The notes under the pieces are model-generated. The model was not told the origin of the DNA, searched no databases, and saw nothing but the letters and a program-made list of their open reading frames with translations. A stretch of DNA of 64,000 nucleotides from Octopus sinensis (lineage: Eukaryota), in contig NC_043025.1 in assembly GCF_006345805.1 (NCBI RefSeq), forward strand, positions 8,990,001 to 9,054,000. Reading direction: 5' to 3'. Made by a program: the position numbers and the translations under genes. This document shows positions 48,759 through 62,004 of the stretch, piece after piece (the first letter of the stretch is position 1; the number at the start of each line of letters is the position of its first letter).

Positions 48759-48830
48759 AAATTTCTGGAATAATCAGATCACAACCATCCAACAAGGGTC
48801 CTTTCAAAATCTTCCAAGTTTAAAGAAATT
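48759..48830 (+). CDS. 72-nt LRR exon (phase 2-2) of an extracellular-type LRR protein
   Basis: TGTTTCAG acceptor and GTAAGT donor; translates (L)NFWNNQITTIQQGSFQNLPSLKKL, a complete 24-aa typical-class LRR. Confidence 0.85.
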
Positions 48831-49559
48831 GTAAGTGGTTAAGTTTTTTTATGCTAATTTATTTACGAAATTTTTCTAGGGATACCATGTTTCTCTCATC
48901 TTTCTTTTTCTCTCTGTATCTCTAACGTATATTCCGCTACCATATTCGTGTTGGAGTGTGTATGAAAGTCCCTGCAATTGTTTGTGTCTGTATGTGTTAG
49001 CATCAATGTCTAACATTTTGTGTATAAGTGTACGATTGAATGAGAATATATATGTTTGTATTCGTTTCTATAGCTGGGTATATTATGAAATACGTATTTA
49101 TGCAGAAGTCGTTTGAAAAAATTATACACACTTGGAAAAAAAGAAAAGAACGTATAGAAATATATTCGTTCTCACCTTTTTGAGATGCTGCTTCATTGAT
49201 ATGAGTTATTTTAAATTCTACAATTACAAGAGGTGCCTAAATTGGAAGTCGTCATTTTCTGTTTGTACAGTGAGCTACAGCTGGGGCAATTTGGTCAAAC
49301 TGTCCAGTGTGATGGCTTCTTATGCCGTTTCAGTTTCTTTAGGAAGGAAGTTAGAGTAGTCAGTCGTCCACAATATAAGACAATGTTTGGTGTGTCCCTC
49401 GTACGTTTGTCTTTAAGTGTAATGATATTACTTACGTTGATATATTTTTACTTTCATTTCTATCCTCATTCGCAATTGTCATATTGTTTTGCTTGTCCAT
49501 CTTGTCTGTTTTCTTGCTACTATCTTTTCTTAATCATCGACTTACTCGTTGTTACTGAT

Positions 49560-51300
49560 TTTTGTTGTTGTTGTTGTCGTTGTTGTTGTCGTTGTTATTG
49601 TCGAGTGAAACCGAGTTTATTGAGCGAGTTGCTTTTGGAAATGTCAATTGATGAGAAACATCTGCATAGAAAGATGCACCGCGGCAACTCGACCATTATC
49701 TCATCCGTGAGGGGCTGATTGAAGACGGGTTGAAACGGCCGTAGTGATTAACGAATCCCGTAAAATCAATTTTCCATTTCCCTTATGTGTGTGTATGCGT
49801 GTGTGTGTGTGTGTGTATGTGTGCATGTGTGTGTGTGTGAGTATACGCTTAGACGTTGGTATGGCTGTGTGATAACAATTTTGCTTCTGTACTCTGTCCC
49901 TCTGCGTGTACTCTGGTCTTCTCCTTTCTTCTTTTACTACTTTTCCTATTATAGGTTCCTCTATACACTTCTCTGAGTCTGAGACCTTCTCTTTCTCCGT
50001 CTTCAGTTTCTCCATCTCACCCTCTTGTAGTTGAGTTCCTGAATCTTCCATCAATTCACCTGTCATCTTCATACTTGCTTCCTCCTTCTCTGACTCATTA
50101 TCACACACCTTCTTAATTATTTTTTCAATTTCCTTTCCCACTCACTTTTATCATCTTTCTTTCTCGTTATCTTTCTTTCCCACTTATTCTTTCTTCATTT
50201 CCTGGTTAGTCGGTGGCGGGCTTACCCTACCACTCCTCCTTTTTCTTTCCACTAGCGTGCATTCTCCTTCCGCTGTTTTCTCATTATTCTCGACACCCTT
50301 TTCAGTCTCTATCTACTCCCTCCGTTGGCATCTCGCATTCATGTGTCCCTCCTCGCAACACTCGAAACACACAAGCGGCTTGCTTTCCACCTTCACTCCC
50401 AGTGCAACACTATCTCCTCTGCCATTCCGCTCAAGTTCTCCACTTTAGCCTGGATTGTTAGTTCCAACCAACAGCCCCAGCAGCTTGTTTGCTCTGGTGG
50501 CCCTCAATATTCCAGCCTCGTCGTCCATGTTGTACACAATGGCTGTCATCAGCCATATCTCCTCCAGCTCAGGGGGCACCTGGCCCAACCCAACCATCGC
50601 CACACGTCCGCCGCAACAGGATGGCAGAAGAATCCATTCTTCTGAGCGGACCGCCTCCGTAGCATGCCTCATCGCTTCCTCCTCCGATGTGAAACGCACA
50701 TCCATAGTTGCATACTCCCTGCATCCTGTTCCGAAGGTTATCATCCTTTCATGCCTTCCAGCATCCTCTCGATCCCCTCCACAGTTGCTATCTCGATCCT
50801 TCCTGTAGCGACCCTCACAGTCCTGTATGTCACTGTCTTCCTCATAACGCTGTTCACTAGCTCTTCCGGTGGTGTCAATTTCATCTTCTCGCCTTCCCCC
50901 TCAGCAGCCTATCGCCAGCTTTCATCCTCCTGGCCTCGACCTCTACTTCAAAAGTGTACAATGCTTCTCTCCCCGCTTCTCCCCCAGTTGCGACTGCACA
51001 GCTGTGGCCGCCCGATGGCGCCTTCTCCATATTCCTAAATGGGAAAAATCAACCCAACAAAACTTTAACGATATTAACAACGATATTAACAACAGCAACA
51101 ATCAACAATAAATTCACGTTCCACTCACAAATACAACTCAACTTCAACAACTCGACCTCAAAAACAACACCTATCAACTACAAAATTCTCTACTCAACTC
51201 GACTCTACTTCGACGTCTAGACTTCTCCCTCTATATCTACGTATTGAACAAGCCTACTTCATCGTCTGGGGGTGTCCACACAACACAAGTAAACTAGAGA
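49560..51300 (-). mobile_element. Gag-like ORF1 retroelement (non-LTR type), no ORF2 seen
   Basis: MGKEIEKIIKKV at its 3' part; YATMDVRFTSEEEAMRHATEAVRSEEWILLPSCCGGRVAMVGLGQVPPELEEIWL is homologous to 57000-57459; (CAA)n-like tract at 49560-49600. Confidence 0.55.
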
Positions 51301-51323
51301 AGATTGGCACATACATACATACT

Positions 51324-58959: not shown

Positions 58960-61320
58960 ATACTTCGTTTCAGATTGTGCTGTTCGCGTAACTTCTCCCT
59001 CTTCTTTTCCCTTCTTTGTCAGTGTTGATAACTTTAACTTTAATATCAGATAATGTTTGTGAGCCGTTGGGAAACAACATATAGTTGACCATTAATACGC
59101 AGTTTCAGGCAAGAATAGCTCCAGTTTATCGAATGCCTGCCCATGTGATTTATTGATAGTCATTGCAAATGTCAAGCGAACGGGATTAGGTGTCTCAGTG
59201 CCAGCCTTATTCTGTGAATGAGAATACGTCTCCCGATCAATGTGCCACTTATTACTGAGGCTTCAATCGAGTTTTGATGGAAGGCCTCCACTTCCAGTCT
59301 TGTTCCGTTATAGAGACCATTTTCAATTGAAATATTCCTCAGGAGCATGATTATGGAGTCAGGTTTCAAATACAATCTAAGAGGTGGCATTCCAGATGGT
59401 ATCCATGGAATCAGAAATTCCAGTGGATATCGCTCAGCTTCAGCAGGTCATCTATGAAGATCTTATCCATGCTGTAATAAAAGCACTGGTCCCCTGGGAG
59501 TTTATCCATAACCCCTTCGTTTATCTTTAAGTAGTCTGAACTTTTTGGTGAGAGGATCACTCTACTTGTTCTTTGTTCTTGAGGGGCATTGCCAAAAAGC
59601 ATCATTTATCAGCGACCCATTAAAGCATGAATCATGTAGCACGTTTACATCATCACTGACTCACTTGGACCTTGCACAAGAGCTGTGGTGCCATTGTCAA
59701 AGTGTAGTGGTCATGTTGCGAATTCTCTTCGATCTGTTATTGCTCTATTTTGGCTCAACATATAAATGTATGAAGTGTAACCAGAGAGGAGAGTTCTCAA
59801 TGCAGACCTCAATTACTGCCTCACGAGTTCCTCTTGGCAATATTGGCAGAACTTGCCTGAAGTCTCTACCAATGAACACAGCTTTTCAACCGAAACCTTT
59901 ATTGTTGCCAGTGATTTCTTTCAGAGCTTTGGCATTAGCATGAAAAGCATACAGAGAGATCGTGGAAGCCTCATCTATAATAATCAAATACAAATTTCTC
60001 AAATAATTTGTGTGGTCAGACGTGGGTGGTACATTGCAAAAGCTAGTTTCCAACAGAGGAACGGGCAATTTGAACAAATTGTGCACCATCTTTCCACCAG
60101 ATAGCAATGTTGAAGCTATGCCTCTCCACGAACCACAGCAAACTTGATAGGTTCTCCTTCGTAGATGGGAGATCAGTGTATTAAATATGTAATTCTTGTC
60201 CCAACCTCCAGGAACATCTGTGCAGAAACAGGAACATTCCTGCACCTCACCTCACCCTTTTAACTGTCTTCAATGACTGAATCAGTGACCACTCTCTGTT
60301 CATCACTAAGGGTTGGAATGAGTGGGTAGTTCACGTCCTCTTTATGCTCAACCCGTTACACTCCAACCGGTTCATGCAAGGCAGTATAAAGGCAGCTAGT
60401 GCTATTTTCAATTAGCACGGAATTTATGGAGTGTAGAGTCTGCATTCTGACCTCGCTGAACATAGTCTTCCATCATAGAGTACTTGTAAGTGTTTCCACA
60501 GGCGAAGGACATTAAAGAGCCATTCTCCATACAAAGGTCATGTACCATGAATTTATTTAACTAGATCATAGAAATTTCGGTTAATACCATTCTGTCTACA
60601 TCATCTCTGATCTTCACTTTGTCTACGAGCATATGGCAGTGTGGAAGTCCACTATTTTGAAACTCGATGATATGGGCATGAACTATTGATACATCAAATA
60701 CGTGTCTGTCCTTTATATCCTTCAGACGTTCAGTGAGATACAACTTGTACACTCTTGCAACCAAATCTGGTCAGTTTCCTGGTGTCCCATTTTGCTGCAG
60801 ATTATTTTCTATTTCATGGCACTTAAGGTTGGATGTATATGTGACAATTAAGTCAGGTTTACCATACTCTGATGCAATTGGCATTGCATCCTGATTATAT
60901 TGATGCATATTCCGAGTACAGCTCCTGACTCAACATTCTCATCAGCTGCTCTCTGCAGGTAGTCCATAAGTCCACTGTACTGCTCTACGAGCAACTGGGC
61001 CTGATGGTCCCCAAGGTACTGCAATCAGCAACCCTAAATTACATCGTGAGTCGTCTGCGAGCGGATGTTCTGCGTTTCGCCACATATAGAATCCCACAGT
61101 GCCATCCGGACTTTACATGAGGGAATATAAGTAGATAGCTCATTGGGACTAGATGGCACAATGTCTACGCGATTCACTCTGCAGGGGTATTCCATGGATA
61201 GACAAGAATGTCTCTATTTTCACGGTGCAGCTATTTCATTGCTTGTGGAAAAATTGGAACGATTTATATAATCCCTTCCTCTGAAGTGTAGTTCACACTT
61301 TCGTAATTACATTTTACCTG
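58960..61320 (-). pseudogene. Helitron RepHel relic, copy 2 (lacks ~0.9 kb present in copy 1)
   Basis: MVARVYKLYLTERLKDIKDRHVFDV..IEFQNSGLPHCHML, GGWDKNYIFNTL..GIASTLLSGGKMVHNLFKLP..IIIDEAS and IMLLRNISIENGLYNGTRL; collinear with 44650-47870. Confidence 0.9.
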
Positions 61321-61932
61321 CTGGCACTTTCATTCTCTTGTTGTTCAATTAAGTGCTTATTCCTATATAACTCATCTTTTTTCAACTGCTTTATCCTCTC
61401 TTGAGGAGTCATTTTCGTTTCTTCTTCGTCTTCTTCTACCACTTTGCTACATATATACTATCCCTGATTTATTTTCCTTCACCATCCCCCTCCTCCTCCT
61501 CCCCCTCATCATCATCATCAGTATCATCTTCAGCGCTATCATATTTATAGTCCTTCTGCTAATCATATTTTCGTATTCACTAATCGTTATAATTTATCTT
61601 GTCATCATAACTATTTCCTTCCACCATTTACTCTGCTATTTCTAGCATGCAGAATCATCATCACCTTCCTAATCAAAGTCGTCATTAACCAATTCATCGG
61701 TAGCCTTTCTCATTGTTTTCGATAATAATCATCATCATTATCCCCCTTTTCCTCCTCACCGTCATTATTATAACATTTACCATCAACATCGCCACCCTCC
61801 TCCCCCTCATCATCATCATCATCATCCCTGCCATTTCCTCTTTTCTTTATATGATTCTGAAGATACAAGATCTCATATTTTATTAGAAATCTTTTTAATA
61901 CTCTTTCTTTTTAACTGTGTTTTTTATTTCAG

Positions 61933-62004
61933 AGATTTCGATACGAATAAGATCACGACTATCCAAGAAGCAGCCTTTCAAAATCTTCCAAGTTTACGCT
62001 GTTT
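61933..62004 (+). CDS. 72-nt LRR exon (phase 2-2), paralogue of 48759-48830
   Basis: TTTATTTCAG acceptor and GTAAGT donor; translates (L)DFDTNKITTIQEAAFQNLPSLRCL. Confidence 0.85.

Follow-up and report, generated by a model that had tools for sequence, protein, structure and literature searches.

Duplication, with probable cassette exchange and probable selection on the predicted concave face, of single-repeat LRR exons in an octopus adhesion GPCR family

The window analyzed here is a stretch of 64,000 nt of the Octopus sinensis genome (contig NC_043025.1, positions 8,990,001 to 9,054,000; G000:C29:8990001-9054000, + strand), and it contains two 72-nt exons, A and B, each coding for a single leucine-rich repeat (LRR). 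These exons raise a double question: which gene do they belong to, and why do they differ at the very residues that such repeats are predicted to expose to a ligand? The window was joined to the next 200 kb, so that 264 kb were examined, and coordinates above 64000 are those of C29 minus 8,990,000. Our answer, which we regard as likely, is that one-repeat exons in the LRR region of an adhesion G protein-coupled receptor (GPCR) are modules that have been duplicated and exchanged as cassettes, with diversifying selection acting on their predicted concave face.

Exons A (48759-48830) and B (61933-62004), both on the + strand, are the only LRR exons of the window. Both have a tttcag acceptor, a gtaagt donor, and, in the case of A, a frame that is open. 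Each opens on the last base of a split Leu codon and closes on the first two bases of such a codon, hence both are of phase 2-2. Their products are (L)NFWNNQITTIQQGSFQNLPSLKK(L) for A and (L)DFDTNKITTIQEAAFQNLPSLRC(L) for B, and the peptides NFWNNQITTIQQGSFQNLPSLKKL and DFDTNKITTIQEAAFQNLPSLRCL are read on the + strand at 48760-48831 and 61934-62005. All the counts of the earlier note on this pair are reproduced. The two exons differ at 19/72 nt and at 9 amino acids, with only two purely synonymous codon changes (ACA/ACG and ACC/ACT); the six x positions of LxxLxLxxNxL all differ (K/R, K/C, N/D, W/D, N/T, Q/K), and a run of 23 nt, CCTTTCAAAATCTTCCAAGTTTA, is identical. The differences affect 12/15 sites in the five most variable codons, versus 7/57 of the other sites (Fisher p = 1e-6). 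Chance is ruled out as the source of this clustering.

The introns upstream of A and B are homologous, as had been claimed, and share colinear blocks on the + strand: 44187-46221, an intronic block specific to these arrays, is 91% identical to 58491-60517, and 47158-47898 is 94% identical to 60596-61334, whereas the exon-proximal unit around B (61670-62154) shows 78% identity to 48478-48983 around A. The earlier note had also used one segment as a neutral flank (45121-45360 vs 59414-59653). Its count of 5/240 differences is exact, but the segment is unrepresentative, because its block is 91% identical overall and identity drops to 78% near the exon. Divergence is thus a mosaic along the unit, which weakens the neutral-flank argument for this pair. 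The strong evidence is that of the whole exon family and not that of the A/B pair. Exon B is the most divergent member of the subfamily.

This type of exon is present in about 45-55 copies in the genome, grouped in arrays with a spacing of 5-16 kb. A search with the exon and ~90 nt of flanking intron gives at least 40 copies, and a degenerate pattern of the scaffold has 42 matches, versus 0 for the control. We aligned 35 of these copies together with the adjoining 400 nt upstream and downstream; around exon A the family-wide conserved flanks in this alignment go from about -300 to +360 (48460-49190, + strand). All 35 keep the AG, the 72 nt and the GT, with no gap, stop or lost splice site, although the flanking introns carry indels. 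The consensus, xLxxNkITTIpQGSFQNLPSLxx(L), is that of a typical 24-residue LRR (LxxLxLxxNxLxxLxxxxFxxLxx), with little or no variation at L/F, N, I, I, F, L, and L. Codons 1, 3, 4, 22, and 23 correspond to LRR positions x5, x7, x8, x2, and x3, and codon 6 to x10. In LRR proteins, positions 2, 3, 5, 7, and 8 make up the textbook concave face that binds ligands.

Variability among the 35 exons is concentrated in these codons. Codons 1, 3, 4, 22, and 23 have a nucleotide diversity (pi) of 0.42-0.60 at each of their three positions, and codon 6 one of 0.29, versus 0.06-0.15 in the intron upstream (-200 to -1) and 0.10-0.21 in the intron downstream (+4 to +78 after the exon). Diversity is near zero, third positions included, at the structural codons L/F2, N5, I7, I10, F15, L18, and L21. 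Rates were tested by counting methods, with parsimony changes counted on a tree built from the introns. Per site, the variable codons (LRR positions 2, 3, 5, 7, and 8) have 9.3 changes, the introns 0.9-2.2, the third positions of scaffold codons 0.88, and the seven structural codons 0.38. The variable codons therefore change ~5-10 times faster than introns and synonymous sites, and the claim that substitutions are enriched at predicted concave positions, originally made from two exons, holds across 35. The mean pairwise proportion of nonsynonymous differences (pN) in variable codons is 0.60, versus a synonymous proportion (pS) of 0.098 in scaffold codons. Among pairs of copies with 2-5% intron divergence, 42% of the variable-codon sites differ, while the scaffold sites follow the intron rate.

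Among 150 distinct variable codons there are 0 stops, versus 7.06 expected from base frequencies. Codon 2, which lies within the 5′ variable patch, only toggles between Leu and Phe. The 5′ patch occurs in 25 different versions among the 35 exons, and the 3′ patch in 17. Between species, a putative orthologous exon of O. sinensis and Octopus vulgaris differs at 11/72 sites, versus 43/786 in introns (p = 0.003). This pattern would indicate selection for binding surfaces that differ among repeats and among paralogs. It suggests that the variable positions bind a ligand and that selection rather than mutation bias is the driver.

Which gene carries these exons? LGR/glycoprotein-hormone receptors and Slit have 72-nt, one-LRR, phase-symmetric exons, and the earlier note called exons such as A and B typical of these classes. 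The exons downstream point to another class. To place the domain exons, we used as tblastn queries octopus proteins with the same C-terminal part as P0004, an O. sinensis "LRRC15-like" protein. Colinear with A and B on the + strand, one finds LRR exon C (66616-66687; L031:2616-2687), which belongs to the family, and LRR exon D (80753-80824), which is atypical; an LRRCT-like cap exon (91467-91625); Ly6/uPAR-like Cys-rich exons (96751-96843 and 98728-98916) that end in CCVGNLCNKN; SEA-like exons (101251-101340 and 104280-104411); HormR (108588-108710 and 109321-109449); GAIN exons ending in a GPS motif, CVYWDE...CSCDHLTSFALLM (GPS at 117934-118122, or C29:9107934-9108122); seven-transmembrane (7TM) exons (118875-125049); and an open frame with transmembrane helices TM6-7 (129292-129762). 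Exons A, B, C, and D are all symmetric, 72 nt long, and of phase 2-2, and the reading frame continues unbroken through all four to the cap. In exon C the near-invariant LRR asparagine is replaced by Ser (DLSRSKIRII), and the paralog at 241455 has Cys.

The conceptual product of A-B-C-D-cap scores 90.6 bits with Pfam LRR_8. In the locus translation, GAIN ends in a GPS (56.8 bits, cut-off 22.5) with a predicted HL-T/S cleavage site, and 7tm_2 is matched by two pieces (44.1 and 41.8 bits, cut-off 20.6; profile positions 3-126 and 173-250), the exon for TM4-5 not having been located at the locus. The HRM score, 25.3 bits, is slightly under the cut-off of 26.2. In P0131, which belongs to the family, the HormR and GAIN region matches the solved ectodomain of ADGRG6 (6v55) with E = 4.7e-24. 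The Ly6/uPAR-like exons show a weak match to LYPD1 (6zss, E = 0.0015). Splicing of the LRR exons to the GPCR exons is suggested by colinearity, by continuity of the frame, and by overlapping octopus models that join the same types of domains (P0127/P0128 and P0130-P0132, which link LRR-cap-Ly6/uPAR-SEA-HormR and SEA-HormR-GAIN-7TM). From these predicted domains, the gene would be an ADGRG6-like adhesion GPCR (class B2) with an LRR ectodomain, in which A and B are among at least four consecutive single-repeat LRR exons. Since the downstream exons match GPS and 7tm_2, the gene would code for an adhesion GPCR and not for an LGR, a Slit, a TLR-type or a TIR protein. The 7TM pieces of an LGR would be of the rhodopsin type (7tm_1) and would directly follow the LRRs and hinge, whereas here they match the secretin/adhesion type, with HormR and GAIN/GPS between the LRRs and the 7TM. 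Slit, in which four LRR blocks precede EGF repeats, LamG and a C-terminal cystine knot, is rejected as well, there being no EGF, LamG or C-terminal cystine knot in the colinear exons or in the family models, and so is a TIR ending.

The name "slit homolog" in public records arises from LRR similarity only, and it is not the only misleading one. Public annotation splits the genes of this family into misnamed fragments, called "slit homolog", "SLIT and NTRK-like", "LRRC15-like", or "kinase". All exons of the family end in TT-GTAAG (48829-48836 and 62003-62010 in the window), so that retention of the intron gives Leu (TTG) followed by a TAA stop. The public models P0121, P0004, P0127, and P0128 stop by such intron read-through, which results in truncated and misnamed proteins.

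Given that the LRR exons of the locus are all symmetric, they might be skipped or chosen in combination to give receptor isoforms for immune or chemosensory recognition. Besides symmetry, this idea finds some backing in the strong conservation of near-exon introns, in one O. sinensis family model labeled "isoform X4", and in the expression of octopus-specific adhesion GPCRs in axial nerve cord, sucker, and skin (PMC6408891). However, introns of 5-30 kb are unlike known clusters of mutually exclusive exons, the conservation of introns is explained by their youth, and the predicted folding of exon plus flanks is just moderately stronger than that of shuffled sequences (z = -2.2, which is unremarkable). 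We therefore consider combinatorial splicing distinctly unlikely as the explanation of the pattern.

How, then, have the exons multiplied? The copies are found mostly on C29, at 2.26-3.02 Mb and at 9.04-9.23 Mb, with two on C18 and about a dozen on unplaced contigs. At C29:2.88-3.02 Mb (- strand) there is an array of 15 exons spaced by 4.6-16 kb and followed by a cap region 98% identical to that of the window gene. A second local paralog has six family exons and one D-type exon, whereas the 5′-truncated copy of the window has three and D. Family LRR exons thus number at least 3, 6, and 15 in paralogs whose cap regions are 96-98% identical. The cap exon and its introns are themselves present in at least 40 copies, with 68-98% identity, which implies a wider gene family with dozens of members.

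Several scales of duplication can be recognized. Exons A′ (209994) and A′′ (223991) lie in a tandem duplication of a 14-kb unit, with ~97% identity. At a larger scale, the whole gene region is segmentally duplicated, the sequence between 33828 and ~89101 having a second copy at 194995-264000, 161-175 kb downstream, with 93-98% identity; the part of this segmental duplication that lies in the window is 33828-64000 (+ strand), and it goes on to at least +89 kb. Its left edge is formed by a 100-N assembly gap (33728-33827). Because the gap and the edge of the duplication coincide, the part of the window left of the gap may be separately scaffolded, and the assembly may lack the 5′ end of the gene. 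The 2-kb intronic block upstream of A (44187-46221) has ~14 full-length copies in the genome, those on placed contigs being inside LRR-exon arrays, and it is hence rejected as a high-copy transposon, an identity that would have disqualified it for comparison. It includes a remnant of a PIF1-like helicase (45352-45774, - strand), with an open frame of 140 amino acids and a Pfam PIF1 score of 67.1 bits. Such helicases are found in Helitron-type elements, and the frame overlaps the sampled flank by 9 nt. The tandem pair, the arrays of 72-nt exons, and the co-duplication of the array-specific intronic block all bear out the earlier suggestion that the gene grows by duplication of one-exon modules.

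The number of exons also differs between species. The syntenic locus of O. vulgaris (L051; OX597843.1:20591265-20693393) is ~5.5% diverged in aligned introns and has family LRR exons at 4389, 50238, and 92054, a content unlike that of the O. sinensis locus. For example, a 43-kb segment with another family exon replaces the 1.7-kb segment of O. sinensis that contains the exon at 157641. The annotated gene at this locus spans 82 kb, with a product of only 151 amino acids and a low-complexity N-terminus. Exon number and content thus vary both between paralogs and between these loci, and the fixed one-to-one correspondence of exons that would have spoken against modular growth is not seen.

Duplication would not be the only process at work. 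The copies L011 (C8530:15227-18388) and L024 (C4530:9510-12671) are without any difference along 1,227 nt on the upstream side and 921 nt on the downstream side, but have 41 differences inside 487 nt centered on the exon. The patch has the look of a cassette exchanged between paralogs or alleles by a process of the gene-conversion type; the two contigs may be haplotigs, and in that case the patch would be an allelic polymorphism. None of the sampled copies is the donor of the L024 cassette, the best match being 92.7% identical. The replacement shows how divergence in variable codons can become bimodal relative to that of introns, since pairs with ~3% intron divergence have either 1/15 or 10/15 differences. 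The A/B mosaic of the window fits the same process. Within the exon, there are no four-gamete violations that would reveal recombination between the 5′ and the 3′ variable patches.

From these observations one can propose how the arrays would change. The exon boundary falls inside the β-strand motif LxxLxLxxNxL of the predicted repeat, and, because the exons are symmetric, any unit could be duplicated, lost, or replaced without breaking the frame or the register of the repeats. Tandem duplication of one-exon units of ~5-16 kb, larger segmental duplications, and replacement of exon-centered cassettes of ~0.5 kb, by a process of the gene-conversion type, would then be the three ways by which an array changes. 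The background of introns and scaffold codons would be young or homogenized, while the codons of x2, x3, x5, x7, and x8, and more weakly x10, have diversified at a rate well above that of neutral sites, and no stop has arisen in them.

Concerted evolution could produce part of this pattern without positive selection, if conversion homogenizes introns and scaffold whereas the x positions, being unconstrained, retain old neutral diversity. The existence of mosaic units is in line with this (A and B are 91-94% identical upstream and 78% near the exon, and the L011/L024 patch is replaced), as are the step-like rather than clock-like increase of variable-codon divergence with intron divergence and the raised pS inside the variable codons (0.33). 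Yet contiguous conversion tracts would homogenize variable patches of 6-12 nt along with their neighbors, so that finding 25 distinct 5′ and 17 distinct 3′ patches in 35 exons despite conversion requires selection against homogenization. Neutral codons would also hold stops, of which 7 are expected and 0 seen. More generally, conversion merely redistributes diversity, and hyperdiverse, stop-free patches amid homogeneous sequence call for selection for different binding faces. Neutral concerted evolution is thus improbable, which leaves duplication and cassette exchange with diversifying selection as the preferred reading.

Several results nevertheless weigh against it. Some concern the sample: the copies were gathered by similarity to a 161-nt query that includes intron, they represent ~35 of roughly 50, and several are on unplaced contigs that may be haplotigs or mis-assemblies. 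Others concern the rates. For the A/B pair alone the exon is hardly more diverged than the adjacent intron (74% identity vs 78% for the surrounding ~500 nt). In scaffold codons overall, pN is close to pS (0.091 vs 0.098), and so the signs of purifying selection are confined to the strictly structural residues and to the lack of stops and indels. The youngest duplicates (≤2% intron divergence) have no significant excess of variable-codon changes. Diversification is episodic or delivered by conversion, and it is not demonstrably ongoing.

A last set of contrary results concerns the gene copy of the window. The assembly gap cuts it on the 5′ side, and neither tblastn with the N-terminus of P0004 nor scans with regular expressions reveal an exon for a signal peptide or an LRRNT in the 264 kb. 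Among the called public proteins (66-210 and 224-714 amino acids) no spliced product has these exons at high identity, and the sole model that uses this exon subfamily is the 151-residue O. vulgaris prediction. To match its relatives, the SEA-like exon at 104280-104411 (L035:280-411) has to change frame at a run of eight A, failing which it shows two in-frame stops; the apparent frameshift would be a lesion of a pseudogene or else an indel of the assembly. These observations (no spliced product among the proteins searched, the frameshift, the missing 5′ exon, and a duplication that adjoins an assembly gap) would all be expected if the LRR exons were relics, passively carried by a dead gene copy in a repeat-rich and recently duplicated region. 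Against this, the 35 copies are all exact in length, frame, and splice sites in spite of the indels in their introns, the structural codons evolve ~2.5-5 times slower than introns, the downstream GPS and 7TM exons are open and above Pfam cut-offs, and the frameshift sits in a homopolymer. It is thus very improbable that relic exons explain the family pattern, and the copy of the window could be dead without changing the conclusion at the level of the family. A mutational hot spot or targeted hypermutation at exon ends, without selection on the protein, is the least credible alternative, because, although all three codon positions are fast in variable codons (6.6 changes per site at third positions) and the variable patches adjoin splice sites, codon 2 inside the 5′ patch is invariant at its positions 2 and 3 (Leu/Phe only), the two patches are separated by a split Leu codon that is conserved, stops are absent, and the youngest duplicates have 4/135 variable-codon changes, or about two independent events, and the lack of a clear excess there argues against constitutive hypermutation.

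The preferred reading, in which modules are duplicated and exchanged under selection, can be set beside published systems. An octopus-specific expansion of adhesion GPCRs ("group 3") was described from 22 sequences, of which 5 have LRRs, with expression in axial nerve cord, suckers, and skin, and with positive selection at the level of branches but at "no specific amino acid sites" (Ritschard et al. 2019, PMC6408891). Like group 3, the family analyzed here has a GPS and an adhesion-type 7TM, N-terminal LRRs in some members, and tandem clusters (PMC6408891), and plausibly it is part of that expansion. The earlier work relied on fragmentary protein models (PMC6408891), whereas here the signal is placed on LRR codons, together with the one-LRR-per-exon layout and the change in exon number. 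We found no description in the literature of exon-modular, site-specific hypervariability in octopus adhesion GPCRs.

Among vertebrate receptors, the likeness is to ADGRG6 (GPR126) by the HormR and GAIN region, as seen in the match of P0131 to 6v55, and some NCBI models are named "ADGRG6-like". ADGRG6 has CUB and pentraxin before SEA, HormR, and GAIN, whereas the octopus family has a variable number of LRRs, then Ly6/uPAR-like and SEA-like regions. Neither CUB nor pentraxin has a Pfam match in the family models or locus translations, the N-terminus being LRR instead. ADGRA2/3 (GPR124/125) have N-terminal LRRs with an LRRCT before HormR and GAIN; the Ig domain found in ADGRA was not detected here. 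Both ADGRG6 and ADGRA2/3 are single-copy and conserved in vertebrates, whereas the octopus family is expanded and diversifying.

The LRR-ROCO and LRR genes of Ectocarpus offer another comparison, as they have 72-nt one-LRR exons, exon shuffling, and diversifying selection (Zambounis et al. 2012, PMC3341825). The offset of their "type II" exon, xLxxNxLxxxxxGxxxxxxxLxxL, is also that of the octopus exon, and their arrays are recombination hot spots with a variable number of exons (PMC3341825); the octopus shares the one-LRR 72-nt exons, the variable number, and the mosaics. The differences are also clear. The Ectocarpus genes, those of a brown alga, code for ROCO GTPases that are intracellular and have introns under 1 kb, whereas the octopus gene codes for an animal membrane GPCR and has introns of 5-30 kb. 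A hallmark of Ectocarpus is the presence, in introns, of intact or dead LRR exons on the non-coding strand, whereas no antisense or dead family exon was found in the 264 kb of octopus sequence. By its gene structure Ectocarpus would be the closest analog of this system, not a homolog.

In the variable lymphocyte receptors (VLR) of lamprey and hagfish, variability is concentrated on the concave face, at the x residues of LxxLxLxxNxL. The octopus exons resemble VLR in this concentration at the x residues, in the 24-residue type of LRR and in their cassette-like diversity. However, VLR cassettes are donors without splice sites that flank an incomplete germline gene, into which they are copied by somatic assembly, whereas the octopus cassettes are AG/GT exons in gene order, and the diversity seen is in the germline, between paralogs. 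A cassette system of the VLR type does not fit the octopus arrays, all octopus cassettes carrying a canonical acceptor and donor.

Outside the LRR units, the window is rich in repeats, which make up almost all of its upstream half. Tandem arrays occupy 1-1552, 1925-2808, 3098-4549, 10663-11399, 13748-14408, 16317-17181, and 21576-22422, with periods of 184, 177, 364, 123, and 225 nt, in addition to trinucleotide runs. There are many copies of a ~180-nt unit (GGCTGTGTGGTAAGTAGCTTGC...) that resembles a short interspersed element. Remnants of a retroelement lie in inverted orientation at 6465-8588 and 52610-53890 (6521-7527 vs 53696-52701, 88% identity), with one copy in the intron between A and B; weak matches to Pfam RVT_1 and GIY-YIG, below threshold, would fit a Penelope-like element. 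Beyond the window, the intron between the cap and the Ly6/uPAR-like exons has an open frame with a mariner/Tc1-like transposase motif (...DGAPANYSH...; 95284-95700, L034).

Adhesion GPCRs are among the least understood receptors, and the octopus expansion had been published without an identified ligand-binding region or selected site. The present analysis narrows the evolving surface to about five residues per LRR and indicates that the number of repeats is itself labile. An "expanded family" thereby becomes a testable hypothesis of recognition, by which the concave face would bind a ligand in chemotactile sensing, wiring, or immunity, and the family would be an animal counterpart to the one-LRR-per-exon shuffling of brown algae. 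A more ambitious proposal is that octopuses have a germline repertoire of adhesion GPCRs with interchangeable one-repeat cassettes, duplicated, swapped between paralogs or alleles in tracts of ~0.5 kb, and possibly spliced combinatorially, in which selection keeps concave patches near-unique. We hold this to be unlikely, but, if true, it would amount to an invertebrate recognition system with a logic like that of VLR or Dscam, which may serve chemotactile, self/non-self, or neuronal purposes.

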